Source: Takakia lepidozioides
Taxonomy: Eukaryota > Plantae > Bryophyta
Length of the DNA: 64,000 nt
Assembly: GCA_030704615.1 (NCBI GenBank)
Contig: CM060731.1
Coordinates: 48,856,001-48,920,000 of the forward strand
Reading direction: 5' to 3'
In this document: in pieces, positions 8,602-63,679 of the stretch
Position numbering within the stretch: position 1 is the stretch's first letter
Layout of the letters: every line of letters starts with the position of its first letter
Position numbers and translations under genes: made by a program
Notes under the pieces: model-generated
What the model was told of the DNA's origin: nothing
The model's input: only the letters and a program-made list of their open reading frames with translations
Databases searched by the model: none

Positions 8602-8603
8602 CT

Positions 8604-8615
8604 TGGTATCAGAGC
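8604..8615 (+). promoter_or_regulatory. Primer binding site for initiator tRNA-Met
   Basis: TGGTATCAGAGC, 2 nt after the 5' LTR. Confidence 0.95.
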
Positions 8616-8656
8616 TTAGAGTTCAGTACGCGATCGTCCTTGGGATTGGCCTCATC

Positions 8657-14849: not shown

Positions 14850-14854
14850 CTCAG

Positions 14855-18735: not shown

Positions 18736-20808
18736 TCAAGAGCTTTGACAACATAGTTTACATGACCATTCATTCAGCCATCTGCACATTGCCATGGATT
18801 CTGCAGGCACAAGCAAAGCCTTCCACACCACACCATCTGGATTGATTGGCATTTTATTAATTAGGTCCATTGCCTCATCCAGTTGTCCCACACGTCCAAG
18901 AAGGTCCACCATGCAGCCAAAGTGCTTTATTGTCGGAGTGACACCATGATGTTCACTCATGGAATCGAAGTAGCATCTTCCTTCATTCAGTAGGTCAGTG
19001 TGGCTGCAGGCAGAGAGAACACATATAAAGGTGATACTGTCCGACTTCAAGCCTTTCTTTTGCATTCCTTCAAATAGTTGTAGGACCTCCCTATGACAAC
19101 CATGTTGGGCATATCCTGCGATCATCGCATTCCACGACACCACATTTCATTCAGCCATATTGTCAAATATTCCCTTTGCATCCTCATTGCAGTCACATTT
19201 CGCATACAAGTGAACCAGGGCAATGTCCAGAATGACATTTGGTACAATTCCAACTTTGATGATGTCACCATGAACCTCTTTGCCCTTTTCCAGGGCTGCC
19301 AGGCTTGCACACGCATTGCAAATGCACACAAACGTGATGTGGTCAGGCTTCACCCCTTCCCCCAGGCCTCCATCCCGCACCCCTGCTGTGCATATCCTAC
19401 AAGCATGGCGTTCCATGACACCAAATCTCGTTCAACCATATTGTTGAACACTCCCTCCACATCCTCGATGTTCCCACATTTGGCATACATGTCTACGAGG
19501 GTATTGTTCATAATCACATCTGGTACAATTCCAGCTTTGGCGATGCAACCATGCACCTCTTTGCCCTTTTCCAGGGCTGCCAGGCTTGCACACGCATTGC
19601 AAACACAAACAAATCTGATGTGGTTGGGCTTCACCCCTTCCCCATCATTTGCTCATAGGTCTCCAAGGCCTCCATCCCGCGCCCCTGCTATGCATATCTT
19701 GCAAGCATGGCGTTCCATGATACCACGTCTCGTTCGGCCATATTGTTGAACACTCCCTCCGCATCCTCCATGCTCCAACATCTGGCATACATGTCAACGA
19801 TGGTATTGTTCAAAATCACATCTGGTACAATTCCAGCTTTGGCAATGCAACCATGCACCTCTTTGCCCTTTTCCAGGGCTGCCAGGCTTGCACACAAACG
19901 TTATGTGGTCGGGCTTCACCCCTTCCCCCATCATTTGCTAATAGGTCTCCAAAGCCTCCATCTTGCGCCCCTACTGTGCATAACCTGCAAGCATTGCGTT
20001 CCATGACACCACGTGTTGAACACTCCTTTCGCATCCTCAATGCTCCCACATTTGGCATATATGTCCACCAGAGCAGTGTTTAGGATGACATCTGGTACAA
20101 TTGCAGATTTGATGATGTCACCATGGATCTCTTTGCCCTTTTCCAGGGCTGCCAGGCTCGCACACGCATTGCAAACGCATACAAACGTTATGTGGTCAGG
20201 CTTCACCCCTTCCCCCATCATTTGCTCATAGGTCTCCAAAGCCTCTATCCCTCCATCCCACGCCCCTGCTGTGCATACCCTGTAAGCATCGCACTCCACG
20301 ACACCACATCTCGTTCAGCCATAGTATTGAACACTCTCTTGGCATCCAAAGATTGAAAGATTGTAGATATTGGGAAGTAGCTAGTTTTGTTTTGCAGTAG
20401 CCTGAAGTCTGCTTTTGGATGTATATCTTGGACTCGGTGTTCAGTGATGTTTTGGTGCCTCTTGTCCTGCATTTTGACTCCAGCCGAAGATGAAAACTGA
20501 GCGTAGACATAGCCAGGACTAGACTTGAAGGAACAAAATCAGAGTTTAGATTAAATTGGAAAGCACTACTAAAGGACCCAGTAAGTAGACCACTTCTTGC
20601 ATGCTTGAGCTCCAGCAACTGGATCAACCGCACGATCTGTAGTTGCCGCTCCGCTGAGCACTTGCTCTTATATAAATTTAGGCAACTTCGATTCCTTTGC
20701 ATGATCTCTGTCACATTGGCGAGAGATGTCAGGGGTCCCTGAGAATGGATGCCGTCTACATTTGGCATACATGTCCACCAAGGCAGTGTTCATAATGACA
20801 TCTGGTAA
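18736..20808 (-). pseudogene. Fragmented PLS-class PPR gene cargo (P/L/S, P2-L2-S2, E1)
   Basis: Repeated VVSWNAM, HITFVCVCNACASL and NTALVDMYAKCG motifs, ending HFGCMVDLLGR..PDGVVWKALL. Many frameshifts and internal duplications. Confidence 0.9.
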
Positions 20809-20824
20809 TCTGACAGGCATTCAC

Positions 20825-22810
20825 CTTTTTGCCTCGGTTGTCCAACCATTGACTGGGGTCAGAAAAGTATTCATTCCACAGCTTCTCCTCGTCTGAGTTA
20901 CCTATTTCTGGATACTTTCCTGTTGTCACATTGACAGTATAATGTCAAAGTCACTCCAAACTAGATTCACTCAACCAGCTAATTTGCAGAATTCAACATG
21001 GAAATGTAGGGCCGGTTCTGATAAGAGGGAAAAACAGGGTGAAATGTGTTGAAGAAGGTGCCTTCATTAGCAGTGCCTGATTTTGTCAATTGTGGCGCTA
21101 CTGCTGCGGCTTCCAGTTGATCATCTACCCATGCAAGTTTCTTGTAGCTATTGATCCACATGGAATCAAAAGGTAATCTTGTGCTTGAAATATGGCCTTC
21201 TTGGATGAATCTGGACCCACACTCTATCCTTGCTCCTTCAGCTATCCATGCCTCTGCACAAATCATACATACATCCTTGCCTTGCTGCTAACAGCTGACA
21301 ATGATAGCCTAGATTTGTTAGGAAACACCCAACTCAACTTATCACACCAGTTCCTATGCTCAATTGCATCTGCTACTCTTTGTAATCCAACAGACATTCA
21401 CCTTTTTGCCTCGGTTGTCCCACCATTGACGGGGGTCAGAAAAATATTCATTCCACAACTTCTCTTTAGGAAACACCCAGCTCAACTTATCACATCAGTT
21501 CCTATGCTCAATTGCATCTGCTACTCTGTAATCCAACAGGCATTCACCTTTTTGCCTCGGTTGTCCCACCATTGACGAGGGTCAGAAAAGTATTCATTCC
21601 ACAGCTTCTCCTCATCTCTGTCACCTGTTTTTCGATACATTCCTGTTGTCACATTGGCAGTATCATGTCAAAGCACTCCAAACTAGATTCACTCAACCAG
21701 CTAAGTTGCAGAATTCAACATGGAAATTTAGGGCAGATCTGATAAGAGGGGAAAACAGGGTAAATGTGTTGAAGAATGCCTTGATTTGCAGTGCCTGATT
21801 TTATCAATTGTGCCGTTGCTGCCGAGGCTTCCAGTTGAGCATCTACCCATGTAGGTTTCTTGTAGCTATCCTTCCACAGGAAATCATAGGTAATTGGAGC
21901 TTGAAATCTGGCCCTCTTGGATGAATCTAGACTCACACTCTATCCCTGCTCCTTCAGCTATCCTTGCCTCTACACAAATCATGCGTACATCCTTGCCTTG
22001 CTGCTATAATCTAACAATGACAGCCTAGAATTGTTCCAGCAAACACCCCAACCCTACTTTGACTCCAAACTATCAAAGATTCACTCAACCAGCTAACTTG
22101 CAGAATTCAACATAGAAATTTAGGGCAGATTCTGATAAGAGGGGAAAACAGGGTGAAATGTGTTGAAGAATGTCTTGATTAGCAGTGCCTGATTTTATCA
22201 ATTGTGTCGCTGCTGCTGCGGCTTCCAGTTGAGCATCTACCCATGCAAGTTTCTTGTAGCTATCTTTCCACAGGGAATCATAGGTAATTGGAGCTTGAAA
22301 TCCGGCCCTCTTGGATAAATCTGGACCCACACTCTATCCCTGCAGCTATCCATGCCTCTGCACAAATCATGCATACATCCTTGCCTTGCTGCTAGCAGAC
22401 GCATCCAACAAGCATTCACATTTTTGCCTCGATTGCTAAGACCAAGTTGAATCTCCCAAGAACCTTGTAAACGCGCTCAAGGACGCGGAAAATCTGAATT
22501 GCATCTGCTTCTCTCTGTAGTCCAACAGGCATTCACCTTTTTGTCTCCATTATCCCACCAATGACTGGGGTCGGAAAAGCGTTCATTCCAAAGCTTCTCC
22601 TCATCTTTCTCCTCATCTCTGTTATCTGTTTTTGGATACTTTCCTGCTGCCACAACGGCAGTAACTTGTCAGGGCCAAGTCTGATGAGAGGGCAAAACAG
22701 GCTGAAATAGGTCGAAGAAGAAGGTGCCCTCACCACATTGTCCTTGACCTTGTCTCATGACCCATGGAGGATTTGGCCACCATCAACCCAGAAGGACCTC
22801 TGTGTGTACT
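20825..22810 (-). pseudogene. Tandem array of intron-split OSB-type PDF motif exons
   Basis: Exon A (EEKLWNEYFSDPSQWWDNRGKK, GT donor) ends at 22537, 21548, 21402 and 20825. Exon B (AG acceptor, IHPRGPDFK.KIT.DS.W.DSYKKP.WVD.QLE) starts at 22320, 21926 and 21210. Spliced in phase 0 they give the WWDNR..K..P..PDFKHK....LW...P.WV consensus. Confidence 0.8.
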
Positions 22811-23491
22811 AAGAGCCCACATTTGCAGGTGTACTAAGAGCCCACATTTGCAGGATGGACAAACATCTTCACATCATACATTAAGAAAAGCCACACCTTG
22901 CGATTGCGGTTGTCCCACCATCGTGCAAATTCCAGCTCTAATGCGGTGTACTCAAAATCTGCAAATGTCTCCCTCCGCGCTCAAGCATCCCGTGCTGCAA
23001 GACGTCTCTTCCGGTTATTTTTGGGCATTTCGGGCAGGTTTCAAAGAAATTGACGACGACGATGACGTGTCTACGATGACATGGTGACGAAACATGGTGA
23101 TGATGACGTGGCACTATGGCACCCTATTCCTGCTCTACGCTAAACTAGCTTCCGACCTTCGGTCGTCGCTAGAATATACATATAAAGATTTCCTTCAAGT
23201 TCCTTCAAGTTCCTTCTAAGGGGGTCTCTCTTGTGACGCCGGGGAGTTGCAACCTCCACACTGTGGTGATGCTGTTGCGACGCCCTGACGTCGCAAAGGC
23301 GCTGGGGCGCCCTTAGTGACGCTTTTGCGACGCCAAGGCGTCGCAACGCCTAAATTTATTTTTTTATTTTTATTTTAATTTTTTTTGGATTTCCGACGCC
23401 GGGGCGTTGCAAGAAAAAAAATCCGCCGCAGCGAGGGCCATCTTTCCCCCTTCATGCAACTTTACCTGGGCGTCGTAATGGTGTCGCAGTG

Positions 23492-32943: not shown

Positions 32944-34479
32944 ATAACTTTTCTAGGGCTTAAACTGCCCGATACCCGGACTGAAAACCACGATTTTTGT
33001 TTTTTTGGGGTATCTTGTTCGCATAACGTGAGGAAACCCCACGCCTATAGGGTGACATGTTTATCGTGTATAGGTGTTACTTGTTTCTTAAGTGATGCTA
33101 TGAGGGCCTATGTGAGCAGTTAAAAAAAGTTTCTCAATTTTAGTTTCGATGGAGAAAAGGCATCTAGGGAATATCCTTAATATTCGCTTGTGCTCACCAC
33201 TACCCAACCTCGTGTGGGGCAACCTCCTTCTACAACTATCTCCAACTGCTTGATGAGGTCGGGCCGTCGGCCCGAGAGGGTGTACAATAATAGGATAATA
33301 CATATTCATAGTGTTCTCCGTATATAAAGGAGAAGAATGCTCTCCCGCTCTCCTCCCACACCTCTTACTACTTACTTGCTAAGTTAGTACCTACTTTAGT
33401 GGGCTCTGCACATAAACATGAACCATAGCTATGTTAATTAATAGAACAACTGAGCTGTTAATTAAGCCCTAAGATAGAGGTAGACTATGACGTAAGGACA
33501 TTTCATACAATGTTTAACTTAGATGTCTGTCTCTTCTGTTTGGATTCCTCATGAAATGTCCATGGTGACAAGTGTTACATTGGGAAGTACTTAAGAACCA
33601 AGGACCCAATGTTAGTGGCAAGGTGGGACCCACAAGATGGGTGGGCCTTGCCTACCATAAATTGGGTTGATATGAGTTTAGCATAAAGTATGGGTTGAGC
33701 ACAATCCACTCTTCTGCTGGGATAAATATGTTTTCAAATGGAAATTCTAGCCATAGGCAGACATAGCTTGGTGTTGCTTCGTCAATAGGGTCGTTACGGT
33801 CTATGATGAATGTATTTCTATTTAAGTCGAAAGAAAACCAGTTCACAATACATACTTGGAATTTTCTTTTAAATAAACTATAAAATAGGAGGCCCTAAGA
33901 AACTTTATTTGGAATTATTAGTTCAAAAAGATATAGAGGATCGCGATGTGAGCTCTTGGAGCTCCAGCTTTTGTGGTGAGAGAGACGTTCAACGGCCTCT
34001 TCGTCTCTCTCGTCTCACTGATCACAAGGAAGGATTCCTCCTACTAATTGTGGATGCTTTTGGATATTGTTGTGCTAAGCCTCTTTGCTTCCTTTGCGTT
34101 TTGCCACGCAACAAATCCTAGATCGACGACCCATTCCTCCCCAGAACTTTCATTAAACTTGGCCCTGGAATTCATCTCCCCTTCATGATCCCATCCCGCC
34201 CAGTGAGTCCCCTTTAATTGATCCCATGCAGGCCAACGCCTCTATACCATAAACCATTGGCCCCCAAACCTTCCAGCCACCATGCAATTTCTGTGGATTG
34301 ATACCCCAGCCACCATTTAACTTGGTAGGTTCTTGGCACCCCTCCCCCTCTATCCTCACCGAGCTCACTGCCATCTCCCAAACCCTTCTAGCTCTTCCTT
34401 ATAGTGCGAAGGACAATGATAATCATTATATTTATCAATAGTTTGGTCTCGGAACACCATAATTAATAGTATCATTTTT

Positions 34480-34874
34480 TTCATTTGTGTTTGAAGATAC
34501 GCCAAAAGTCTCCAAAACTTTGGATCGTCCAAATTTTCATGTGGATCCCCGAACCTGTTCCTCTCAACATATTTCGCCACAGACGGAGCTTCCAACAATG
34601 CAAGGAGGTATTTCTCAAGCTTTCTAAGCAAACATTTGTCCTTTGCAAATGTTTCGAAGGGTGGAGGGTAAATGCATGACCCCATGGGATTGATGACACA
34701 CTTGTATGGGCTATCATCAACAAGGAGAGTGTTTTCCTCATCATATCGACCTTTGTATTTGTCCCACACTCTCCTAAGAGGCTTCAGAAAAAAAGGGCGA
34801 GAAGATTCTGTAGAACTTTTTGCTGCGTTGAAGTTTCTGGGAGCAATATTGGGTGGACAAACAATGCAATCGTC
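34480..34874 (-). pseudogene. Isolated exon of an FCP1/NIF-like (HAD) phosphatase domain
   Basis: CAG acceptor, then DDC..PFFLKPLRRVW..YDEENTLLVDDSPYKCVINP..IYPPPF. The N-terminal DxDxT motif was not found. Confidence 0.7.
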
Positions 34875-35039
34875 CTGCGACATAACAAAAATAGGCTGTC
34901 GAAAAGTGGAGACGCAAAGCTGCGGAGTGTTTGACATGCTTCCAATTAATATCACGCTCAAATTCGGGTGAGGCGATGGAAGGTGGCACGGAGGTTTCGG
35001 CAGCGATCAAGGGGTTGTATGTTGTAGTATAGGCGATCC

Positions 35040-35340: not shown

Positions 35341-36075
35341 CTCAGACCTGAGGGTGGCTGGTGGAAGCACCTGGTTAATGGGTACATCCTCAATAGCTCT
35401 CCTCTCGACACTACAAGAGATGAGCGTTTTTAGGACTACGGCTTTGGCGGAGTCATAAAAACTGCACTAGGTAGATGACTACAGAGCGCTAAAATGCATT
35501 GCAGTCATAGTTTTATGACTTTGTAGTAATGGATATCACTACATGACTCCGGAAAGTTAGGGAGCATTGGTCAAACATTGTTGACCATGATAACATGGAT
35601 GGTTTATATGACTAGTGTGATATGTTTGACTACACGTGGACAACGTTTCATGGAATCTTATGACTCCATGACTGAAGATGGTTTCATAGCTCTATTTATA
35701 CGACTACATCACTACGCGTGTCATTTTGAAGGCACATATAATGCAAATAAGGTTGCCCATTAGGTTTAAAAAAGTTAAAAAGTTGCTAATAAGGTTGCCC
35801 ATTAGGGTAATCGTGAACAGAAAGGAGGGCTGGGACTTGGCGTTTTTTTTGTCTCCTACGCCACACCACATAGCCGAGGGATGGAACGCGATGATAGCAG
35901 GATATGCAGGGGTGTGGGATGGAGGCGTTGAGCAAATGATGCACGAAGGAGAAGAGGAGGAGGAGAGGAGATGAGGAGAAGCCAGCTTGTCGTTCTTGGG
36001 AGAGTCAGCTTGGTCTTAGCAGGCGTGTTTCAATCTTTGACTACTCAGCTACGCCGTAGTGGTTCAATCTCACAG

Positions 36076-36797
36076 ACCAATCCGACATTACCTGACTACA
36101 GACACAAGCAACACACACAAGAGGTCCTTTTAGGTTGATGGTCGGTCAAATCCTCCATGGGTCAGGATAGGTCAAGGACAATGTGGTAGGGCACCTTCTT
36201 CTTCAACCTATTTCAGCCCGTGTTGCCCTCTCATCAGACTCGGCCGCAAGATGCATATTGAATTCTGTAAGTTAGGTCGTTGGGTAGATCTGTGGTGGTT
36301 TGGAGTGACTTTGGCAAGTTACTACCACTGTGGCAACAGGGAAGTATCCAAAAACATATAATAGAGGTGAGGAGAAGCTTTGGGGTGAACACTTTCCGAC
36401 CCCAGTCAATGGTGGGACAATGGAGACAAAAAGGCGAATGCCTGTTGGACTACAGAGAGAAGCAGATGCATTTCAGATTGTGATAAGTAGGGTCGGGGTG
36501 TTTTGGGGAAGAACTCCATATCAGTATGGTTGGGGTGTTTGCTGGTAGAATTCTAGGCTGTCAGAGGCATGGATAGCTGAAGGAGCAGGGATAGAGTGTG
36601 GGTCCATATTCATCCAAGAGGGCTGGATTTCAAGCTCCACATTACCTATGATTCCCTGTGGAAGGATAGCTACAAGAAACCTACATGGGTAGATGGTCAA
36701 CTGGAAGCGGCAGCAGCAACGGCACAATTGATAAGGTCAGGTACTTCTACTGAAGGCACCTCCTTCAGCACATTTCACCCTGTTTTTTCCTCTTATC
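36076..36797 (+). pseudogene. OSB-type PDF motif exons in CACTA 2 (first cluster)
   Basis: 36076: TNPTLPDYRHK..TQEVL.VDGRSNPPWV (frameshifted). Exon A ..DPSQWWDNGDKK ends at 36433. Exon B IHPRGLDFKLHITYDSLWKDSYKKPTWVDGQLE starts at 36608. Splice sites are partly mutated. Confidence 0.78.
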
Positions 36798-37669
36798 CGT
36801 TTCTTGCGAGCTGTCTTCTCTTATCTGTTTGTCTGCCCAGTCTTCAGTGAATGCGTCAAGGCTTTGTGTTTTGGCTTCTTCCTCGCTTTTGTCACCCTCT
36901 CCCATGAATATCTCTGGTTGGCGCTCAAACCCTGTTGAGCTGTAGATGTTGTCCATGCCAATGCATTCTTCTTCACCAAATCCATGTTTTTGCCCTAAAT
37001 CATTGATGTCTTGGCTGGATTTCTGCAGAATAGGCATCCCATCCCCTATTTCGGCCTTCTTTGCACTTTCCCGTGTCAACATGTTGATGTGGGGTGTTGT
37101 TGTAGTCTTATTGGAGTGTGATCACTTATATGGTATATCTCGTCCAACTCATCCAGTGCCTCCACTCATTATGAGTGAACTAACATGACACTTGTGCTAT
37201 TGGTTGCATCATGTACTCCGTGCTTGGCAGTGGGTAAGCTTCTCCTCCTTCCACGTACTCGTTGATCACTCCAAAAGGTACTCCATACATCTTCCCTTGA
37301 GGTCCTACCCCTTTTTTTGCTTCTGTGATTGTTTCAGCTTTGCTGAAAGTTTGCCAAGACCCATGTTGGGTTAGTGTGTGACGACTGTGTCTCATGTTAT
37401 TACAGATTTTGCACAGTGTTCTTTGTTTGGGCCTTCTGATGCCTTGTCTGATGGACTCAAGTTTGTCAAAATCAATTTGTATCCACTCTGCTTCCATGTT
37501 GTTGCTGTCAGCAGCTTGTTCTTCTGCCAGCTGAAGCCCGACAGGGCCTGGGTCTTCCCTTATGCCCGCATCAGAGCATTTCCCAATGTCTGTAGTTGCT
37601 TCATCCTTCCTCAACTCCGCCCTCTCTTTGGCAGGTTGCGCACCTTCACCTCCACCTCCACCTTCACCT

Positions 37670-37882
37670 CCATGGTGACATCATCAAAGCTGGAATTGTA
37701 CCAGATGTCATTCTGAACACTGCCCTGGTGGACATGTATGCGAAATGTGGGTGCATTAAGGATGCGAAGGGAGTTTTCAACACTATGGCTGAACGAGATG
37801 TGGTGTCATGGAACGCGATGCTTGCAGGGTATGCAGAGCAGGGACATGGTATGGAGACCTATGATCAAATGATGGGGGAAGG
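37670..37882 (+). pseudogene. PLS-PPR fragment in CACTA 2
   Basis: HGDIIKAGIVPDVILNTALVDMYAKCG..DVVSWNAMLAGYA, closely related to 19150-20340. Confidence 0.88.
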
Positions 37883-38612
37883 GGGCACCTTCTTCAATAG
37901 CTCACAGCGGCTACAAGTGGGTAGATGGTCAACTGGAAACAGCAGCGGCAACAGCACAATTCATAAAACAAGGCGCTGCTAATGAAGGTACATTCTTCAA
38001 CATATTTCACCTTGTTTTCCCTGCTATCAGAGTCGTTCCTAAATTTTAATGTTGAATTCTGCAAGTTAGCTCGTTGGTGGATCTATGGTAGTTTTGGAGT
38101 GATTTTGATATGTTACTGCCAATGTGGTCGACAGGAAAGTATTAATAAATAGATAACAGAGACTCGAGGAGAAGCTCTAGGATGAATACGTTCCCGACCT
38201 CAGTCAATGGTGGAACAATCGAGGCAAAAAGTGAATGTCTGTTGGAAGCAGACGCAAGTCAGCATAGGAACTAGTGTGATAAGTAGGGTTGGGGTGTTTG
38301 CTCAAGCAATTCTAGGCTGTCATTGTCAGCTGCTAGCAGCAAGGCGAGGATGTATGCATGATTTGTGCAGGGGCATGGATAGCTGAAGGAGCAGGATAGA
38401 TGTGTGGGTCCAGATTCATCCAAGAGGGCCGGATTTCAAGCTCCATATTACCTATGATTCCATGTGGAAGGATAGGTACAAGAAACCTGCATGGGTAGAT
38501 GGTCAACTGGAAGCCGCAGCAGCAGCGGCACAATTGATCAAATCAGGCACTGTTAATCAAGGCACCTTCTTCAACACATTTCACCCTGTTTTTCCCTCTT
38601 ATCAAATCGGCC
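37883..38612 (+). pseudogene. OSB-type PDF motif exons in CACTA 2 (second cluster)
   Basis: Exon A ..SQWWNNRGKK at about 38165-38230. Exon B CAG|IHPRGPDFKLHITYDSMWKDRYKKPAWVDGQLE starts at 38414. Confidence 0.8.
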
Positions 38613-41600
38613 GTAAGTATTGCACTGTTTAACAGGGTCCTTGATTCTAGTAGCATCAGAACAAACTAGTATTACAACAATTCAGCCCATGTGTGGGCTT
38701 GCTTATTTTTTGCTTACTGGACCTTTTCAGGCATGGATTTTTGGACCTTGTGACCTTTGAGGTGTCCATTGGGACATTGGTCTCCTTTGGATTTTTGTAA
38801 TATCATTTACACGGCGTGTATTCCCCTGTACTTGTCTATTTTGAATGTCCTTGTGGTTGCTAGTATGCAAGAGGGGTCCATTCTGTTTTTATATCAGAAT
38901 TTCACCATGTAATGAAGAATTTAAATCATTTAATCTATTTTTATTTTGTATAACATTATTAAATTAAACAATAATACCATTTAAAATTTTCCAAGCTGTT
39001 ATCCCCTGTTTTCAAAATTAAAATATAAATTTAAGAATTTAAAATTACAAATATAACTATTAAATTATTTTTAGAGACATTCTTGATGACACATGGCATA
39101 AACCCTGCCATATATGCTAGTCATATATTATGTCTAAGTGCCACATGTCACATCTGAAGTGCAACAGGTGTCGTGAGGTGTCGCTTGCGTAGTGGTGCAC
39201 GTGTTTCTCTAAAGCCTCTCCATGTAGGCAATGCTCATCAGACAATGTAGCCATATAGTTAGTCGTATGTAAGTCATAGAGTTATAACTACATCACTCTC
39301 TTATGCATGACTCCAGGTGTCACGCACGCAGTCACGGCTATGACTTGCAAAATGCAGTCCTAAAGACTAGTCGCTATGACAGGGTTTTTTTCACTACAGA
39401 GTGATATAGTCATGAACGCATATAGGACTGAAAAAATAGTCATATGTGCAGTCATAAAAACGCTCATATATTGTAGTGCGAATCTAAACTATGGAACCCA
39501 TCACTGAGATGGATGACACATGGCTTTAAACACAAGTCACTGGGCTCACCTCTTTGGAGAGCTATATGGACAATCTGGAACTCAATCAGGCCTCGTCTGG
39601 TTAAAAATGACCCCCAAACTTACGAGGAAACAATGCGCCAATATCTCACCCTCAACTCGAATACTCCTTCCGCAACAGAAAGAGCCTCTGCAGCCATATT
39701 CTCAGCCTGGGATAGATTACACATCACTCAGATAAAAGACATTTGGTGTGGGCAAGCCTTCTTATCCCAAGACCAAATCAATGACATCATAGGTACTCAA
39801 AGATGCATATCGGGCTACCAACTGCTTCTGCAAAGGATTCCAGACACTTGGAAACAACTCTCATTTCGGGGCCAGATCAAGGTAGCCCTAGCAATTGGGT
39901 CACCTATTCCAATTCCCCAAACCATGTCATATACATTACTGAAACGAAATCAGGCCATTTCTCGGGGCAAGTTCTTGACAGAATTGGAACTATCCAACTA
40001 GCTCAGGATTCATTCACTGTTTCCCATACAAATCTCCGGTGGTCATCTGCCGACAAAGATGTGAACCCTTCCGCGCCTCTTGACCAGACACCGGTTACCT
40101 GGCTATCCTCAAACTTGTCCTTTGGGTGGAAGGAGGTCCTCTCATGGGGCTGGCCATTGACCCTAAGGAGTGGTCATGGGACATTGGCACCTCTCGCCCT
40201 CTGTTCTTTAATTATTCTACCAAAGCAGCATACCGCTCACTGCTTAAAACACCCCAATTCCAAATCAAATGGTCCTCCAAGTGGGCATGTCATGGCCTCC
40301 AACAGGCTAGATGGAACCTTATCTAGCCAACATTTGGAATAAGCTCAGACCTGCAAAAGTGGCCGCATTTCTATGCCAAATGGCAAACCGGGTTCTCAAG
40401 GTGGGGAGGCCCTCACAAGTTTACTAAACCCTGGCTATCCTTTTCAGAGGCATTACTATGCAAATGTTGCAGCTTAGGTATGGCAGAATCTCTTGAGCAT
40501 TGCCTCCTTCATTGCAACATACCCTAAGAAACCTGGCCTCGTCTCATCCCCATTATGAATATTTGGAAACCAGGGTCACCATCCACAATTCAAAATCTAC
40601 TAAACTATGACGTTCTGTATCACCGGATCTATTGTCATTGTCCCGTCTTTGAATCCTTCAGATCAATAACACTATGGAATATCTGGAAGGTCAGATGCAA
40701 CTGGTCCTTCACTACAGAGAGGACATGTCTCTCTATGCTGTTAGCCACCATCTTTCATGAAGTTCAAATTGAGGCAAGGAATGCTTGGGTGAAAATGATT
40801 GCAGACATCAGCAGGGATCTGGACGCTGAACCTGGGATCTTCCGTAAATTCCAATCTTCATGGGGTAAGGTCGACATCATATGCAGCAGCTCTTTGTCGA
40901 GATGCTGCCAATGGACCAGGAACCCTCCAATCAGTTGGCAAAGAACAACAACGCCACCTCCAGGACTCACCTAAGTTTGACAGGGAAATTAATTGGAAAC
41001 ATGTCAACGATAGACACTCCACCAGGCTCAGCTTTGATCATTCATAAACTTCACCAACTCATTCCCCTCACCTGCCTTCTTCTCTTTCACTATTTGTTGG
41101 CTGCCACTTGCAGGGCTCCCCTAGGCTACCTCACGTCCTCTCCCACTCCTCCCTCACCTCTTCAGCCAATTATACCTTCACAATCTATCCCCATGGGGTT
41201 ACTTCCCATTCAGTCGGTCTAGACTGATGTCTCTCCCCTTGCTGGAATTGCAGGGCTCCTGTAGGCCTCCTCTCGATCTCATCGACTCTCAATGGCTTTT
41301 TTAGTTGAGCCTCTCATGATAGTTTCTCACTTCTGCAAGACTCTCTGTCCCCCAATCGGCCGGTCCAGGATGGTATTCTCTTAGCAGAGTTTCGAAAGCT
41401 CTTTCATTTGCTCTTTAGATCGGAGGTAGGGTTGTAGCTGGTCTACTTAACTATCCTCCTTACCAATTTTTGCCCACAATCGAGAGCTCACAACTCGTGG
41501 TCTCTGGTTCAGTCGTAGCTCGTTCCTAGGTAACAATCTAGGGAAATAGCTATAATTTTCATCTGGTAGGATGGTTCTTTCTCATTATGGATCTTTGGGT

Positions 41601-51955: not shown

Positions 51956-52425
51956 CACTATAGGAAAAGGGGGGGGGGGGGGGGGGGGTTCGACGCCGCA
52001 GCCACGCCGCGGCGTCGTAAAACAGCCCTTTTCGGGCAGGGGGGAAGAACCAAATTTGCGACGCCCGGACGTCGCCAAAAAAACGTCGCAAATTTGTGAC
52101 CAATGCTACGCAGAATTAGCACCGTCCGGGGGTCACAATGTGCGACGCCCGGACGTCACAATTTAAGGGGGTGCATTTGAATTTAGGCGGGAAAAAATAA
52201 ATTTGAAATTTGAATTTCAAAAATTTGTTGACCATTGACTCCGGCGTTGACCATTGACTTCGGTTTTGTCTAATGGCGATATGTTCATTGTTCTACATAT
52301 ATCATGCAATGCATACTTGAACCTAAGACCTCCACATTATAACATTTCTAAGACACTACAAACTAACCAACACACCTACGCTACATCTATGTATCATTAA
52401 AGCAATCTAAATATATATATACACA
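51956..52425 (+). mobile_element. Truncated left end of the CACTA 1 family
   Basis: CACTATAGGAAAA plus poly-G and about 450 bp collinear with 16729-17250. No right end found. Confidence 0.85.
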
Positions 52426-52563: not shown

Positions 52564-54120
52564 ATGGGCAACTCTGCTAACGAAGCAGATTGGGAAAATG
52601 AGGTGGTTGATATGGAGTGTGATGAGGAACCAACCGCTGGTTTTGTGGAGATGTTCAAGGCGAAGACGTGGGAAACCAATGCAAGCTATGACTTTGCGAG
52701 TGATAGAGCTGTTTTTACTGGCCCTCAACCTGGTCCCTGCCTGCCTGAGATGAAGGGCTCATATCCGATTTGGTTTTTTCGTTTGTTTTGGAGGCGACAC
52801 GTGCTTGGGCGAATATGTAGGGAGTCCAATCGTTATGCTGCTGAACCTTTGAGTATGGGCCCTCGTGGGGGGCCTTGGTGGAAAGAGCTCACTGTTCCTG
52901 AGCTGAGGGCTTGGATTGGAGTCTATGTCTTCATGATGGGCATGAAGAAATTGCCCTGAACACGGTTTTACTTTGCAACACTTGGAGACATTCTTCGCTT
53001 CCCTGTCATCTGCAAAGTCATGACTCGAGATAGGTATGAGGTCATACTCCGATTTTGCATCTTGTTGACAACGCCACACTGGTGGCAGATTGTAAGAGTC
53101 CCAATTACGACAAGCTTGGAAAGCTTAGGTAGGCGTGTGATGAGATTGTGGATAGGTGTAGAAATATCTGGAATCTGAACAAAATGGTGACCGTCGACGA
53201 GGTCATGATCCGTTACAAGGGGAAGTACTCCCCAATAGGATGTATATGCCTAAGAAACCATGCAAATGGGGCATAAAGGTGTGGGCCTTAGCTGACTCGG
53301 AGATTTCATATGTCTACGATTTTTCAGTGGACTCTAGTAAGAATGCAGGAGGACCAGATGGCCAGAGGCAGAAAAGGCACGGTTTGGGGCATGTCATTGT
53401 GACTGGCAATTACTTTACCGAGGTCCAGCTTCTTTCTGACATGGCCAAACTTGGCACTTGGGCCAATGGCATGGTAAGATTGAACAGAAAGGGTCTCCCT
53501 CCCTCTTTGCTGAAAATGAAAAATCCAAGACTGCCAAGCAAAGGCAGTCATGGTACAGGATGTATGAGTCGAAGGAGGTGGCTACTGTGTTGTGGTGAGA
53601 CAAGAATGGGGTATTTTTACTGTCATCTGCAGCTAGGCCAGCTTGCAGCCCTTCCTCTCCTGTGACTGTACGCCGTTTTGTGGAAAACCAGAGAGTGCCT
53701 GTGCCATCCGTGCCTGCACATGTGCATGCGAGGGGTAGATGTGCAGGACCAGCTTAGGGGTGCGTACAACTTGCAGCTGCGCACAAAGAAGTGGTGGCAT
53801 CGTCTGTTTTTGTTTCTTATGGATACTACGTTGGCCGTGAATGCGTATATCATTGCATTCTGCAATGGAGAGAAGGATGGGGCGTCGGGCCATGACCCAT
53901 CTGCAATTCAATCTGGCTGTAGCATATGGTTTGACAACGAGCTGCTGCACTGACAACATTGATACCATTGGGGATTCACAATGCACGTTTGTGCATCAGT
54001 GCCTTCACACCACACGGCGGCGAGTGTGTGTCATGTGTCATGTTCGTACTCACCATTAGTGCCCTGGCTGTGATGACAAACACTTGTGTCTTGGCGGTGC
54101 TGGAATGAGGCACACCGGCA
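52564..54120 (+). pseudogene. Decayed piggyBac-type (DDE_Tnp_1_7 / PGBD-like) transposase
   Basis: WKELTVPELRAWIG, MTRDRY, VTVDEVMIRYKGK, YMPKKPCKWGIKVWALADS, TGNYFT (D changed to G), MRGVDVQDQL, KKWWHRLF and a Cys-rich C-terminus CVMC..CPGC..LC...C...H. Frameshifts and stops. Candidate right end GGGG-TTAA at 55631-55638. Confidence 0.88.
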
Positions 54121-55914
54121 TACCTCGAGGTGACTGAATTCTGGCTTATTGTGGTGTCTTTTTTCTTGTGTGTGCATATGGTTGTGTGGGTGGGGGTTCA
54201 CCGGGGTGTGGGATGCATGCATGTATGCTGGAGGGTGTGGATGGCGTGTGTGTGTGGGGCATGGGGTGTGGGTGTCTCTGATGTATGGTGGGTATGGGTG
54301 TTTCTCAGGTTGGGGGGTTGTGTGTGTCCATGCTGGGTGACGGGCAGTGAGGGTCATGGGGGGCTGGTGGTGATGGTTGACGGGCAGTGGAGGGTGTGGG
54401 GGTCATATTTGGGTCTGTTGTTGTTGGTTGATGGGCAGTTTTGGGGGGTCATGGGGGTCTGCTGTTTGCTCATTTTGGGCTGTGGAGGTGATGGGGGACT
54501 GGTGATGGTTCACAAGCTGTGGGGATGATGGGGATCTGCTGCTGCTGGTTGAGGGGCTATGGAGGTGACGGGGGTCCTTCGGTCTTGGCGTGTGTGCGTT
54601 GTGTTTGGGTGGTTTCACAGTTTTGGGGAGGGGAGGGGAGGGGGGTGTAGCAGTCATGCTTGCTGGTTTTGGTTTTGGGGGTCATGCTTGCTTCTTTGAA
54701 GGGGGGGGGGGGGGAATCGTCTGTACACTAGGCATATCGGGGGGTTCAACTCCCCCCCCCCCAGTTTGTGGATCATGTCTTCGGGGTGGTCTCTGGTTTG
54801 GATTCACTGCATTCAAAGCAAAAGCAGGTGCTCGCGGGGAGCTTCAACACAGATGGCCCACATTCGTGACGGTTGGTAGTTGTTAGTTTTTGAGTTGCAT
54901 GTCGGGTGCAACGCCGAAACGTCGGGCTTCCCCGGGCCTTCTTTGGGTGTCGATTTTGGGGTCCCCTATGTTTTCATTGTAATCGGTGATGTAGCCCCCT
55001 TTTTGTAGCCAGAATTGTCTACCGGCTCGGGCAATACTTGGCTTGAGCTGGGATTCAAGTAGAGATACACCTAAATTGAAATCTCTGCCTGCATTTTGGT
55101 TAGAATTCAGGAATTCTTTTTGGAGGTATTAGGAAATCATTCAAGGAACAATTCCACCGTTGCAATTGTGGTTCCAATGCCAATTTGGACACCCCTATGG
55201 CTGAATTACAGGTCAATTGAGCTAAATGGTGCTTTTTGACCCCCCTTGTTTTCCCATACAAAGCAACCCTATGCAGATTTTGCAATTCTGCTTTGCAAAT
55301 TTGGGGGAAGATGCTTTAGGTGCCTGTGAATTGGAATGTGGTTGGGGTCTTGCAAGGAAAAAATATTTTTTCGGACCAATTGCCTGGTCAAACCAAATTT
55401 TCCCTCTAAAATTGGAGTATATACTGCAGATTTAGGGCTGACCATTTTGCTATAATCTTCCTAATGACATAGTGAAATGGGCTGGAATTTTTACAGCAGG
55501 TGCATGAGGTAAGTAGCCTCCTTTCATACTGTTCATCCCTGTGGATGTTTGTTAGCTGGGAAATATACCCTCATCCGTGAGGGTATGTGCTGTTTTTGAG
55601 TGGGCCCACCAAAAACAGCCTCGTCCATTAGGGGTTAAATTAAAAAAAATAAAAATCCCGGACTCGCCCACCATAAGACACACACACCCTAGTCAGTGAA
55701 GAAAGGAAGCAGACCCTCGATACCAAACGACCAAACGCTGTCCCTGTCGCCTTCTTTGTCTATGCATCTCACATGTGCAATGAGGAGCTGCTAAAGCGGA
55801 GATGCTTTGAAGCAGTAAAGTATAGAATGGCTCTGGCAGGAGGTTATCCTTGGGAGAGGATCCTAAGCGACAACATCTCTGAGAAGATATGGCTGCTAGC
55901 TGGCCACTCGTGGT

Positions 55915-56020
55915 TCTCACAGAGAAGTTCGAGAGCTGCAGAGTTTAGACATAAGTGTACAAAGGAGGCCCTTTGGATTGCGAGTTCCCTCCTTGGGTGA
56001 AAGCAGAACCAGCTGCCAAG
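55915..56020 (+). pseudogene. Degenerate PDF-like motif half upstream of the PPR gene
   Basis: RSSRAAEFRHKCTKEALWI, then after one frameshift FPPWVKAE; compare the PDF consensus R.PR.PDFKHK.T.EALW...PPWV. Confidence 0.55.
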
Positions 56021-56267
56021 ATTCAATGTCGAGCAAAATCTGGTGATGGTTCTGATTACCGTCAGCTCCAGGCCAGAACTAGAAAGGGTATTCTTTTGGT
56101 GATGATTCAAGGGAGAATCCAAACTGTTAATTCTCAATGCAGTAACCGATTGTAACTTGTTAAGAAGTAGATGGAAGCCTATCCTTACAAGAGATTGTTC
56201 TTTGAAGCGCCTAGTATAACCATTTTGAGTTCAAAGATTTCGAACTAAGAGTTTGGAGTCATGCAGG

Positions 56268-58610
56268 ATGACAGGGCTAAATCATGTAGAGTTGTTCGCT
56301 GGACATCAGACTTGCGGTGTGGGTGGCACATCGACCATCCCCACTGCTCTTGGAAGAGGATCAATAGAAGGAGTCAACAAGAATTCTCCTGCCACTAGTG
56401 GTGATATGAGAACATTAAGTAAAGTAGGACAAGCGAAAGAGGTGCTGCACTTTTTGCACCACCCAGGCATTTGGTTGGACTCGGATACTTATGTCTGCCT
56501 CTTGCAGAAGTGTACCAACAGGAAAGACCTGGCAGAGGGAAAGCAGGTGCACACCCACATCATCCAAAGTGGATTCAAGCCGAACATATTTCTGTTGAAC
56601 ACCCTTGTCAATATGTATGCCAAGTGTGGGAGCACAAGGGACTCTCGGGAAGTATTTGACAAAATGTCTGAACGAAATGCCTATACATGGACTATAATGA
56701 TAGCAGGTTATGCCCAGCATGGGTTTAGTAGGGAGGCTCTGGAGATCTACGAGCAAATGCAACAGAAAGGCGTGATGGCGGATAAGGTCACGTTCATTTC
56801 TGTTCTCAATGCGTGTGCCAGCCTAGGGGCTGTTGAAAAGGGCAGAGAGGTCCATGCCGACATCATCAAAGCTAGAATTGCGCCATACGTAAATTTGGAG
56901 AATACCCTTGTTGACATGTATGCCAAATGCGGTAGTATGGAGGATGCAAGCCAAGTGTTCAACAATATGGCTCAACGAAATGTGGTCTCATGGAACACCA
57001 TGATCGCAGGATATGCCCAGCATGGGTGTTGGACACAGGCATTTGAGATGTATCGGCAAATGCAAGATGAGGGGGTAAGACCGGACAGGGTCACCTTCAT
57101 CTGTGTTCTCAATGCATGTGCAAGCCTAGGAGCCCTGGAAAAAGGCAAAGAAGTCCATGCTGAAATCATCAAAGCCGGAGTTCCATCATATCTAAATTTG
57201 GAGAATACGCTTGTTGACATGTACGCCAAATGTGGGAGCATGATGAATGCTCGGCAATTGTTTGACAATATGGTTAAGCGGAATGTGGTCTCATGGACGG
57301 CGATGATTGCAGGATGTGCTGCTCATCAGGGTTGTGGTAGGGAGGCTTTCAACTTGTATGAGCAAATGCAGCAGGAAGGGGTGACACCCAACAGGATCAC
57401 GTTCATTTCTGTTCTCCATGCATGTGCCAACCTAGGAGTCCTGGAAATGGGCAAAAAGGTCCATGCTGACATAATCAAAGCTGGAATTGTGCTAGATAGT
57501 AATTTGGAGATAACCCTGGTAAACATGTTTTTCAAATGCGGGAGTGTGAAGGATGCGCGTCAAGTGTTTGACAATATGGCTGAACGAGATGTGGTTTCAT
57601 GGAGTGCAATGATCGCAGGGTATGCTCAGGGTGGTTGTGGTAGGGAGTCTTTCAAGATGTATGAGCAAATGCTATGTGAAGGGGTGACACCCAACAGCAT
57701 CACGTTCATTTGCATTCTCAATGCATGTGCCAGCCTAGGAGCCCTGGAAAAGGGCATCCAGGTCCATGCTGACATCATGAAAGCCGGAATTTTATCATAC
57801 ATCAATTTGGATAATGCTCTTATTAACATGTATGCCAAATGTGGGAGTATGAAGGATGCACGTCAAGTGTTTGACAATATGGCTGAACAAGATGTGGTCT
57901 CATGGACTGCATTGATTGCAGGATATGCTCAGCATGGATGTGTTAGGGAGGTCCTCGAACTATTTCAGCAAATGCAACTGCAAGGTTTGAAACCTGATGG
58001 TATCACCTTCATATCTCTTCTCTCTGCATGTAGCCATGTGGGTCTGGTGGATGAAGGCCGTTACTACTTTGATTCCATGAGTCAAGATCATGGCGTCAAT
58101 CCTACAGCAGAGCATTTTGGCTGCATGGTGGACCTTCTTGGCCGTGCAGGGCGGTTTGATGAGGCAGAGGATTTGATCAACAAAATGCCAACCAGACCAG
58201 ATGTTGGGGTGTGGAGGGTGTTGCTTGGTGCCAGCAGAATTCATGGCAATGTGAAGGTAGCAGAACGAGCGACGAAAAGTATTCTCCAGAGTGATCCACA
58301 GCACCCTGGAGCTTATGTGCTACTATCCAACATCTATGCTGCAACTGGTAGGTGGGAGGATAAAGCAAAGGTGAGAAAAATGATGGATGACAGAGGTATC
58401 ATAAAGGAGAGGGGCTGCATTGATATTGACAACCAGGTGCATACATTTGTGGTAGAAGACAACTTGCATCCACAAAGTGAGGAAGTCCATGTGGAGCTGA
58501 AGAGATTGTGTCTGCCAATGAGGGAGGCCGGGTACAGGCCTGATACACACTTTTTAGTGCATGATCTGGAGGAGAAAAAGGAGATATTTGGAAGGAGTGA
58601 TGGGTGCTGA
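56268..58610 (+). CDS. PLS-class PPR protein, E+ type (DYW truncated); putative organellar RNA-editing specificity factor
   Basis: Open ORF with 17 motifs, L-S-(P-L-S)x4-P2-L2-S2, then E1, E2, a degenerate PG box and HPQSEEV..AGYRPDT..HDLEE. It stops before the HxE..CxxC deaminase signature. The true start may be spliced (CAG at 56264-56266). Confidence 0.9.
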   Translation: MTGLNHVELFAGHQTCGVGGTSTIPTALGRGSIEGVNKNSPATSGDMRTLSKVGQAKEVLHFLHHPGIWLDSDTYVCLLQKCTNRKDLAEGKQVHTHIIQSGFKPNIFLLNTLVNMYAKCGSTRDSREVFDKMSERNAYTWTIMIAGYAQHGFSREALEIYEQMQQKGVMADKVTFISVLNACASLGAVEKGREVHADIIKARIAPYVNLENTLVDMYAKCGSMEDASQVFNNMAQRNVVSWNTMIAGYAQHGCWTQAFEMYRQMQDEGVRPDRVTFICVLNACASLGALEKGKEVHAEIIKAGVPSYLNLENTLVDMYAKCGSMMNARQLFDNMVKRNVVSWTAMIAGCAAHQGCGREAFNLYEQMQQEGVTPNRITFISVLHACANLGVLEMGKKVHADIIKAGIVLDSNLEITLVNMFFKCGSVKDARQVFDNMAERDVVSWSAMIAGYAQGGCGRESFKMYEQMLCEGVTPNSITFICILNACASLGALEKGIQVHADIMKAGILSYINLDNALINMYAKCGSMKDARQVFDNMAEQDVVSWTALIAGYAQHGCVREVLELFQQMQLQGLKPDGITFISLLSACSHVGLVDEGRYYFDSMSQDHGVNPTAEHFGCMVDLLGRAGRFDEAEDLINKMPTRPDVGVWRVLLGASRIHGNVKVAERATKSILQSDPQHPGAYVLLSNIYAATGRWEDKAKVRKMMDDRGIIKERGCIDIDNQVHTFVVEDNLHPQSEEVHVELKRLCLPMREAGYRPDTHFLVHDLEEKKEIFGRSDGC

Positions 58611-60456: not shown

Positions 60457-62591
60457 TTATCCCTTTGTCACCATCTTCAATTGCTTGAAGTTCTTCAAAC
60501 GATCATTCATGCATCCCAGTAGATATGACTGCTGAGAGGGCTTTGAGTTGGCAGGGGCTGATTGGTCAACCAAGAGGTCAAAACCTCCCACCTGTATTCC
60601 ATGTTCTAGATGTTCTTTAGATCATACAAAGTTAAGGAAAGATGCGAAATTTGGATCACATCATATACAGTGTTGGATCCTCAATGAATAACATTATTCT
60701 TTGTTTGGTGTCCTTTCTAGAGTTAGATTGCGTGATAACTAAGAGAAAGAAAGCAATATTGCTATTATTGTTATGTCCGTGGTAACCGGTGGGACATGTT
60801 GTGTCCTGTTTATGAAATAGGCTTTAAAACAAAGGCAATGATGGTAGGGAGATGTTGTCGAGGACTGACCTGTGGTAGACACTGAGCTGGCAAGCGGTGT
60901 TCCATGTCAATGAGAGTGAGTACATCATCGAGCATCCCATACTTGAGTTCATGGTCTGTGGGTGTGTCTGCCCCCAGGCTTGGTGATGCATTCACCTACA
61001 TTATTCTCTTTGGGGCTGAATCAGGCCAAAGTCATACTTCTCTACACTGAAATTTTTGTTCCTGTGTTTCAAACCCTGGATTGTGCCATAAGTTCAACTC
61101 CTTGGCCATATGCTGCAGACAATTGATTGTATGTGAATTTTGAAGGTGGCCCCCTCTCCACCCCCTCGTTTTCTTTTGGCCTTCCATAAAGAGGAAAGGG
61201 CATGACCCCAGATGGAGAACCAACTTAGCAAGAAAAGCCTAGCCAGGAAGCCACAAACATGAGACTTAGTTTAAATATGTTGCTTGGGTGCATACTTCCC
61301 TTACATTGTATTAATGCGGAAGGTGTGATGACAGACCTCAAGAAGCCATGGCTTTAATGAAGCATCAACAAGGATGTCATAGCCGTAGAGTTCAAAGCAA
61401 TGCTTGTCCTGTATCATCACATTTTGCATTGCCAATAAGGAACGCAAGATAAGCATATGAATATTGTGAAAGAGCGCATTCACATCTTGCTCCCCATGCT
61501 TTGATATCATGTGCATCTTCAGGCTATGTAGCGGCCTGCACCCCAGTCACTTGGTACCAGAATGTAAGGGCTATGATAGTGGACAAATAAAGGCACCACT
61601 TTTGCTATTCAGTTTCTTACTGTATTATGGCAGCTATAAACTCCCCACCGATTTAGACAGGGAATGTATCTTTCAAAGAGAGGACCAAAAACAAAAAGTG
61701 AGGGTTGAGGGAGGAGGGTTGAGCACTTACCATTTAGTGCCTGTCTTGGACTTGTATGTGGGCGCATGTTTCTGAATAGAGAAATTCGTGAGATGTACTA
61801 AATTGTTAACAATGTCTTCCTTCTTGATGGTAAAGTGTGCAATTGTGAACCTTGCAAACCCAGATCTGTAAACATATGCCTGCCACAAACCTCTACAGCC
61901 CACCAGTTTATGAACTTTCTTGAAACGTGGTGGAGTTGGATTTGATACTGTTTGTTATTTGCCTGGAAATGTTGGTAATAACATGTCTGAAGGGCTTAAT
62001 CCCATTGGCTGAGCTGGGTCATGGGGTATGCACAGCCTGTTATGGAAGTCAGCCAAAATTGCTATTGCACTTGTGCACAGCTAACAACAAGCCAGTCAGA
62101 ATGTTGGATAAGTGTTGATTAAGGGTCTTCCATCCTGCATGGAGGGAGATTTTCCTGCGAAAGGGGCAACAACATACACTTGTGGGCATTGTCCCTGCAG
62201 GATATCAAGCCTCAGAATTTGCTTGTGGGGTTTGTTGCGGGGGATGGAAGCTCCACCAAAACTTGCCACTACACTCACACAGTCCATGAGAAAAAGGATA
62301 CAGAGACTTCATTGCCGTATGGGGTGGAATAGACATCTCTAATACAACATCGATTACAGCCCTGCTGCTCTAGCTCCTAGTTTGGCCGTAGATGTGACAC
62401 ACTAGCACAATGACTAAGACAGAGGAACCAAGTCCTAGTGGGGAATGCAAGAAAACTCCAATTCTGAGTGGTCGAAGTGATACCTTCAAGGGAGCATAAG
62501 CAATGACAATAACATATATACGAAGGTCGAATTTTTTCCCACCAACCAAATAGGGGTTATCAATGTATCGCTGCACTATGTAATTTTCCAC
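60457..62591 (-). CDS. TTLL9: Tubulin polyglutamylase TTLL9-like, last five exons (62591-62484, 61879-61731, 61535-61337, 60995-60870, 60591-60457); 5' exons lie beyond the window
   Basis: All introns are GT-AG and the frame is conserved. [24 protein letters not shown]; GFARF; HLTNFSIQK; SKHG; [28 protein letters not shown]; DMEHRL..QVGGFDL; TAA at 60457-60459. Confidence 0.9.
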
Positions 62592-63679
62592 CTGTAGATT
62601 GCACCAACACTTCATAGTTTATAAATCTACATTAGACCTTGATGAAGCAACTTTTAAAAAGACTAAAAGATGTCTAAAAGACCTCCACACGTGGTCACCA
62701 GGTTGAAATTCAAACTTAAGAGTAGGCTTCCTACCTCTGGCCAGTAAGTTACCCCAGCTGGGAAAAAGGCAATCCACATGTTTGAACATGGGAATGATGG
62801 TGAGATGGGCAACATTTCTTATGGGTAACTCTGCTAAACAAGAGACAAAATTGAACAGATCACCAGCTCAAACTTGAGAAGCTCAAACCATAGCTGAAAC
62901 CTGTAGTTCTCCTTGAGTCTCAATTCGGGGTTGGATGCTCAAGTTGCTCCAGAGTCAACAATGTTATTGAGCTAATCGAAGGAAACAGCTTCTCCCCTCT
63001 TTTGCCCTGCTTACACCTCTACCCCCATCTGCAGAGTCTGAACCGGGCATGTATGGCCACAAGGATACAGCAAGCAACATCTAAGGGTACACCATCCTCA
63101 TCATCTCTGTCTTTTTAGAAGTTCCCAGAGGCCTTTAGCTATTAGTAATCAAAGTGCTTGGTGGCTTACCTGCACGAGGCACTCTGCCTTAATGCAAATG
63201 TTTGATGCTATACTTGCCCTTTGGTTTCTGTGGTCCTATTGTGTTGTTCTGCTTGTGTCCCTTGGGGCCTCCCATGGATGTAATGAACTCCATTCTTTCT
63301 TACTCTGTATCTCATGACTTGCTCATTCATGTATTGAATGGCATGAGGACCCACATGAAGGAACCCCATAGTCCATTTAGGAGTTCTTAGTGTGTACGAA
63401 CCCAGCCAAAAAGCTCAAGAGTGATTACCGTCCAGATGCTCAGAGTTAATTTGACCAAATTCTACAATTCATCTCCACCTTTTCCACGAAGGCTCTTGTT
63501 GATACAAAAAATCTCTCCCTCTTCTTGGGTGCTCTCAAACTCCCTCGACCATCCAGGGGTCGATGAACACAACCTCTAATGCCTTCATCTTTTTCATTTC
63601 AGGAATAACGAGGCGTAACTGGATAATAATGCCCTCCTACCTCTCTAGGAAATTTTCTACAGCCCTCATAGGAACCTCT

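Follow-up and report, generated by a model that had tools for sequence, protein, structure and literature searches.

A divergent motif of the PDF type found in OSB proteins and a large pentatricopeptide repeat (PPR) open reading frame (ORF) of the PLS class lie next to each other on the forward strand of a 64,000-nucleotide stretch of Takakia lepidozioides DNA (contig CM060731.1, positions 48,856,001 to 48,920,000; hereafter the window), which is transposon-dense plant nuclear DNA with a G+C content of 46.6%. This locus is referred to as locus 3; loci 1 and 2 are the two other pairings of PDF and PPR pieces in the window. Locus 3 probably belongs, as a derived and most likely dead copy, to an ancient family of PLS-class PPR editing factors that bear one to three OSB-type PDF motifs after the transit peptide, and its classification as a pseudogene is likely. 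Intact relatives consist of a transit-peptide exon, an exon for the PDF first half, an intron, an exon for the PDF second half, an intron or no break, and one large exon for the PLS-E1/E2-DYW part. To judge from its sequence, the locus 3 copy is unable to specify a PDF-PPR fusion or a deaminase, because its PDF is frameshifted and divergent, the PDF has no internal intron, no transit-peptide exon is recognisable, the PG box is degenerate, and the frame ends before the Zn-binding HxE/CxxC residues. The features of locus 3 are as follows.

55773-56000, forward strand: 75-codon ORF, ATG to TGA, with the divergent PDF core; the stop is caused by the frameshift
55848-55979, forward strand: PDF relic whose two halves follow each other directly in one frame ('PWERILSD...SWFSQR...AEFRHKCTKEALWI'), from a gapped tblastn in which N-terminal parts of PDF-bearing relatives served as queries
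55980-55984, forward strand: the sole frameshift (5 bases), between 'LWI' and 'FPPWV'
55985-56086, forward strand: end of the PDF and linker ('FPPWVKAEPAAKIQ..SGDG..') in the +2 frame, by tblastn to P0068, P0058 and P0119
56088-56367, forward strand: alternative candidate intron
56152-56266, forward strand: candidate last intron (GTAACT...GCAG, 115 nt, phase 2), putative
56253-58610, forward strand: PLS-class PPR ORF, 785 open codons; first in-frame ATG at 56268
58242-58427, forward strand: E motif (Pfam PF20431, 2.6e-19), residues 664-725 of the PPR ORF
58428-58589, forward strand: start of the DYW domain, its first ~55 residues, by alignment to DYW proteins

An earlier reading of the window from its sequence only had noticed, 5' of the PPR ORF and on the same strand, a degenerate second half of a PDF motif with one frameshift. 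The peptides were present at that place, 'RAAEFRHKCTKEALWI' read in frame with 55773 and 'FPPWVKAE' read at a +2 shift from it, and the motif proved to be longer than had been claimed: a divergent full-length PDF occupies 55848-56086 (+), about 270 bp 5' of the PPR ORF. In the gapped tblastn alignment, the first half ('PWERILSDNIS..SWFSQR', 55848-55934) shared the reading frame of the second half. The frameshift leads to the stop at 55998-56000, and the +2 frame is open from 55955 to 56152. A contig of X1, which may be the source sample, covers 55713-56043 and aligned to the assembly without gaps across the frameshift; an assembly error is therefore an improbable cause of the frameshift.

A hidden Markov model (HMM) was built from 34 PDF motifs borne by PPR homologues. 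The ORF at 55773-55997 scored 21.6 bits against this HMM, and none of 2000 shuffled versions reached that score (mean −2.2, maximum 12.7 bits). The sequence-only reading had named a score no better than that of shuffled sequence as grounds for refutation, and this outcome did not arise. Mononucleotide shuffles of the DNA gave at most 7.0 bits. The best piece of the relic, 55914-55988, scored 20.0 bits, and outside the PDF loci the ceiling among 2977 six-frame pieces of the window was about 6 bits. Pfam, which has no PDF model, reported no family for the upstream peptides.

The relic keeps the order of the family, with the PDF, a 'PPWVKA..IQ..SGDG' linker, a spacer, 'GD..LSK..KE.L' and the PPR array arranged collinearly. 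It carries indels, which are absent from 18 of 19 family motifs, and it has lost D20 and P31, both of which are invariant in the 19 PPR-borne PDFs. The intron that follows 'NR..K' within the PDF is absent, so that the two halves are contiguous; this intron is present in three mapped relatives (L001, L002 and L003) and in loci 1 and 2 of the window. The copy is therefore derived either from an intron-less subfamily or from a retrocopy. No transit-peptide exon or other exon-1 homologue was recognisable upstream of the relic. A high-copy repeat at 55401-55639, with a depth of about 615 in an X2 contig and about 5 in neighbouring single-copy DNA, adjoins the relic on its 5' side, and it may have displaced the 5' exons of the gene.

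The PPR ORF was intact with its E motif, as the sequence-only reading had held. Pfam searches of the 785 codons detected PPR_2 (1.1e-94, 11 stretches) and PPR (3e-89, 12 stretches), and five tandem P-L-S triplets of ~303 nt each were recognised. Resemblance to the beginning of the PPR part in the family ('GD..LSK...KE.L') sets in near 56400. Alignment with four DYW proteins demonstrated that P2-L2-S2, E1/E2 and ~55 residues of the DYW domain are kept. The PG box is degenerate, with a 2-residue deletion ('RGCIDID'), and homology to DYW is lost at 58589, directly before the catalytic HSE, with the stop 6 codons later. The DYW deaminase core (HxE, CxxC and the terminal DYW) was not found in the PPR ORF, which had no match to PF14432, and searches with a DYW HMM and other methods detected no DYW core within the whole window. 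The forward-strand segment 59041-59100 was considered as the missing core; its 20 residues are 50% identical to 'C..CH.ATK.IS...GRSII' (tblastn E 0.83), the match was supported by neither Pfam nor the DYW HMM, and it is probably due to chance. Just past the stop, at 58625, the X1 contig has an 11-nt insertion relative to the assembly (GAAATAGGGAG). The closest homologues of the PPR ORF were PPR proteins of Diphasiastrum complanatum, with 50-55% identity, followed by proteins of Ginkgo, Cryptomeria, liverworts, mosses and ferns. On these matches alone, the DNA would have seemed probably to come from a lycophyte. In two public runs, thousands of contigs covered the PPR body at a likeness of at least 90%, which indicates a very large, young PPR family.

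The PDF and PPR frames can be connected by splicing in many ways. The earlier statement that a phase-compatible donor could not be found does not hold: a stop-free reading from the 'PPWV' frame into the PPR frame is possible with 57 GT/AG pairs. Among them are 56088-56367 and the pairing of the donor at 56152 with the acceptor at 56266. The position of the latter fits the last intron of P0086 and P0073, and the last intron of these relatives appears to be in phase 2, to judge from the bases flanking the mapped exons. Because 57 such pairs exist, no single pair carries weight on sequence grounds. No splice joint was detected at 55.7-56.6 kb in the Logan contigs of the two public runs that contain this stretch; since these contigs are collinear with intergenic and transposon DNA, both runs behave as genomic DNA. 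Exons and ORF pieces were searched separately.

The architecture itself was found in other plants. One to three canonical PDF motifs occur at the N-terminus of annotated PPR and PPR-DYW proteins in Diphasiastrum, Sphagnum, Ceratodon, Calypogeia and one fern. Among the 120 best PPR homologues, 35 have PDF motifs N-terminal to the PPR array; by group, the carriers were 27 of 37 Diphasiastrum proteins, 4 of 5 bryophyte proteins (Calypogeia, Ceratodon and Sphagnum) and 1 of 14 fern proteins, and the motif was present in none of the 43 Ginkgo and Cryptomeria proteins in this set. When the PDF region of the liverwort protein P0037 was used as the query, all 27 matches were PPR proteins. Sphagnum species, Calypogeia and Diphasiastrum were their sources, and PF14432 (DYW deaminase family) is listed for most of these proteins as well. 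Three relatives were mapped. Ceratodon P0073 (L001) has a transit-peptide exon, a PDF first-half exon ending in '..WWDNRNRK', an intron, a PDF second-half exon, a further intron and one PPR-DYW exon. Diphasiastrum P0086 (L002) has three PDFs, all split at the same point, and then one PPR exon. In Diphasiastrum P0269 (L003), a single exon encodes residues 132-783, which run from the PDF second half through the entire PPR array to the DYW domain; a physical PDF-PPR fusion is thus proven without any assumption about splicing. Many annotated Diphasiastrum PDF-PPR models, such as P0080 and P0086, end in E motifs without DYW. The N-terminal PDF(n)-PLS-E/DYW architecture that had been proposed for the lineage of this DNA is therefore real, and its restriction to one lineage is not borne out: it spans liverworts, mosses, lycophytes and a fern.

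The PDF is 68% identical on average per column among moss, liverwort and lycophyte proteins, with 13 invariant columns, and the PPR bodies are 43-55% identical. This higher conservation of the PDF argues for a function. A search of 1.84 billion cluster representatives with a profile of the PPR-borne PDF yielded 1257 clusters at E <= 0.001. Most of the best 150 of these were classical OSB-like proteins, and 12 of the 150 contain PPR arrays; Pfam SSB was matched in 6 of the 10 that were scanned, with one match below the Pfam cut-off. Since the PPR-borne profile retrieves proteins with both SSB and PDF, the PPR-borne motif is homologous to the PDF of OSBs. In a tree of 128 PDF motifs (68 columns), 12 of 13 PPR-borne PDFs fell into one group with an SH-aLRT support of 94, in a tree too poorly resolved for a claim of single origin. 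Five public PDF proteins, P0121 to P0125, have 9-13 tandem PDF motifs and no Pfam domain (P0121, 1160 residues, has 13), far more than the up to five PDF domains reported for OSBs.

The sequence-only reading had counted two further pairings, both in CACTA elements, and had taken the three loci together as repeated evidence for a fusion. PDF and PPR pieces are indeed present and co-oriented at loci 1 and 2, but a CACTA element could be demonstrated only for the pairing at 36.0-38.6 kb. The following features were assigned.

18736-20347, reverse strand: locus 1, degraded PLS-PPR array, 70.8% nucleotide identity to the locus 3 ORF (56253-58610)
20816-22926, reverse strand: locus 1, PDF array of about 4 units with a period of about 720 nt, stops and frameshifts in the units
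35409-39478, forward strand: locus 2, non-autonomous CACTA element of 4070 bp; terminal inverted repeats (TIRs) 22/24, 3-bp target-site duplication (TSD) CGA
36070-36166, 36392-36442, 36611-36712, 38184-38231 and 38417-38518, forward strand: locus 2, PDF pieces
37669-37884, forward strand: locus 2, PPR fragment of 215 nt

In each unit of locus 1, an intron of ~200 nt follows 'WWDNRGKKVN' and divides the unit, and at about 20816 a PDF first-half exon is joined aberrantly to the middle of the PPR array. CACTA ends were not found around this locus (18.7-22.9 kb), which is a scrambled pseudogene. At locus 2, the TIRs at 35409-35432 and 39455-39478 match at 22 of 24 positions, where 0 matches are expected by chance, and are flanked by CGA on both sides; no transposase ORF was found in the element. 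Locus 2 is a captured-fragment element of the Pack-CACTA kind that contains pieces of an editing-factor gene. The PDF unit including its intron is common to loci 1 and 2 (77-92% identity). A shared junction of the two loci was considered and rejected, only about 50 nt of the PPR fragment being common to both. Because only one of these two pairings is in a CACTA element and locus 1 is a scrambled pseudogene, the three pairings are not three independent fusion genes, and the case for the family consequently rests on the other species.

Several observations weigh against the interpretation of locus 3 as a dead member of a PDF-PPR family. Apart from one frameshift, 55773-58610 can be read open with a single intron, and the 2.36-kb PPR frame is free of stops; either selection may still act on the PPR part, or the copy may be of recent origin. 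Some invariant PDF residues are kept or conservatively replaced in the relic (W, R, F, K, LW and P.W; D to E). Most of the fusion proteins in other species come from automatic gene prediction, with P0269 alone free of an assumption about splicing, and the role of the PDF in PPR proteins is hypothetical. One alternative is that locus 3 is a live gene for a PDF-less and deaminase-less, E+-like PPR protein. Translation would begin at 56102 (with the 56152/56266 intron) or at 56268, the PDF trace would be a leader or an upstream ORF, and DYW would be recruited in trans, as angiosperm E+ factors do. The 785 codons without a stop or frameshift beside an indel-rich PDF stretch, Pfam PPR scores as high as those of intact relatives, and the Diphasiastrum models P0080 and P0086 that end in E motifs all accord with such a gene. 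On the other hand, the two public runs, which behave as genomic DNA, supply no transcript evidence, a transit-peptide exon is not recognisable, the PG box is degenerate, and the ORF ends 6 codons past the break in homology, in a manner that resembles a rearrangement and seems accidental. To our knowledge, moreover, trans-acting DYW partners are not documented in lycophytes. We consider a live gene of this kind possible but rather unlikely.

An intact PDF-PPR fusion gene, with the frameshift being an assembly error or bypassed, is very improbable. A single frameshift puts the PDF out of register with the remaining frame, and splice sites of compatible phase are available, but the X1 contig is gapless over 55713-56043, the PDF has acquired indels and lost D20 and P31, and the DYW core is absent. 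The title of the sequence-only reading implies such a fusion gene, which is not supported for locus 3. It is hardly credible that the juxtapositions in the window are accidents of fragment capture by transposons rather than remains of fusion genes. Locus 2 is wholly enclosed by a CACTA element that has TIRs and a TSD, the PDF-PPR junction at locus 1 is aberrant, and transposons are dense in the window; however, locus 3 retains the exact order and the linker sequences of the family, no TIRs were detected flanking it, and the same architecture exists in single genes of other species. Finally, a purely fortuitous resemblance of the upstream peptide to PDF, which the shortness of the match and the silence of Pfam might suggest, is effectively refuted by the score of 21.6 bits against a shuffle maximum of 12.7, by the 20.0 bits of the best piece against a noise ceiling of about 6, and by its order, spacing and strand, all of which are correct with respect to the start of the PPR part.

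Other elements were recognised in the window. A young LTR (long terminal repeat) retrotransposon of the Ty3/gypsy type at 7878-14851 contains a 1541-residue gag-pol ORF (8594-13219), which is flanked by direct repeats of 727 bp with 99.6% identity (7878-8603 and 14125-14851). Two overlapping ORFs at 15122-17030 (+) resemble a LINE-type reverse transcriptase in translations inspected by eye, and 51956-52419 is related to them with 77-84% nucleotide identity. Fragments of a piggyBac-like transposase were found at 52564-53665 (+), with a Pfam match to DDE_Tnp_1_7 (5e-13) at 53240-53665 and a weaker one at 52564-52959. ORF pieces at 61301-62615 (−) resemble, by eye, exons of a tubulin-tyrosine-ligase-like gene, and an ORF at 34365-34961 (−) with a weak NIF match (NLI-interacting-factor-like phosphatase, 3.9e-05) is probably a gene fragment.

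Locus 3 shares tandem P-L-S repeats, E1/E2, the start of DYW and a large intron-free PPR exon with the PLS-class PPR-E/DYW editing factors, such as the DYW-type factors of Physcomitrium and the E+ and DYW factors of Arabidopsis. It differs from them in lacking the catalytic DYW core and an intact N-terminus, and its relatives bear an N-terminal PDF that is absent from published PPR domain schemes; PDF goes unmentioned in a 2022 review of the PPR proteins of Physcomitrium (PMC9459714). With OSB proteins, the family has in common the PDF motif of ~50 residues (LW..FF.DP..WWDNR..K...PDFKHK.T.EALW....P.WV), and the PPR-borne profile finds SSB+PDF proteins at E values of 1e-22 to 1e-64. An intron interrupts the PDF at one and the same position in all three mapped relatives and at loci 1 and 2. 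Unlike in OSBs, the PDF is N-terminal and not C-terminal, its partner is an RNA-binding PPR array, and there is no OB-fold or SSB-like domain: no SSB/OB-fold match was obtained in the ORFs of the loci or in the N-termini of PDF-PPR relatives, whereas true OSBs from the PDF search do match PF00436. A 2026 survey of the OSB family required both OB and PDF and thus would exclude PDF-PPR proteins (PMC13393729). A literature search, thin on subscription journals, found no paper that links PDF or OSB motifs with PPR or DYW proteins; the fusion is thus provisionally regarded as undescribed, in agreement with the sequence-only reading, which knew of no functional description. As for Pack-type non-autonomous CACTA elements, locus 2 alone corresponds to them, with CACTA termini matching at 22/24, a 3-bp TSD and an interior of host-gene fragments, and neither locus 3 nor, as far as seen, locus 1 fits.

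It is established that PPR-DYW proteins in general recognise the RNA 5' of the target C through their PPR array and carry out C-to-U deamination with their DYW domain. Secondary accounts of Zaegel 2006 state that the PDF motif of AtOSB1 is sufficient for binding single-stranded DNA (ssDNA) (PMC6963530, PMC4166229), and OSBs are reported to prefer ssDNA over double-stranded DNA or RNA (PMC6963530, PMC4166229). Most plausibly, the PDF would give editing factors a sequence-independent affinity for single-stranded nucleic acid or place them at the nucleoid; the tethering to nucleoid ssDNA or R-loops put forward in the sequence-only reading is speculative. An AlphaFold2 model of the PPR-borne PDF, calculated from a 128-sequence alignment, consists of a helix, a small Trp-rich hairpin and a second helix (pLDDT 88.9, pTM 0.77). 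No convincing solved relative of this model was found (best Foldseek E 2.1, best VIA Z 4.4, with weak WW-domain-like rows only), a sequence search of the PDB with the PDF profile gave no match, and Pfam, having no PDF model, assigned no family to the N-termini of PDF-PPR relatives.

We tentatively propose a wider picture, which in its full form is doubtful. Many editing factors of liverworts, mosses, lycophytes and ferns would bear a PDF that binds single-stranded nucleic acid and either couples editing to the nucleoid, co-transcriptionally and through displaced ssDNA or R-loops, or raises unspecific affinity for RNA; the module would have been lost in seed plants, and copies like locus 3 would be snapshots of that loss. 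PPR-DYW factors are usually seen as a transit peptide, a PPR array and E/DYW; a conserved module shared with OSBs would add a new component to the editing apparatus of seedless plants. The family also shows the PDF to be a mobile module and not an appendage specific to OSBs, overlooked by domain-based annotation because Pfam has no model for it. Locus 3 itself is a degenerate copy whose main value lies in showing turnover within a PPR family that is very large and young.

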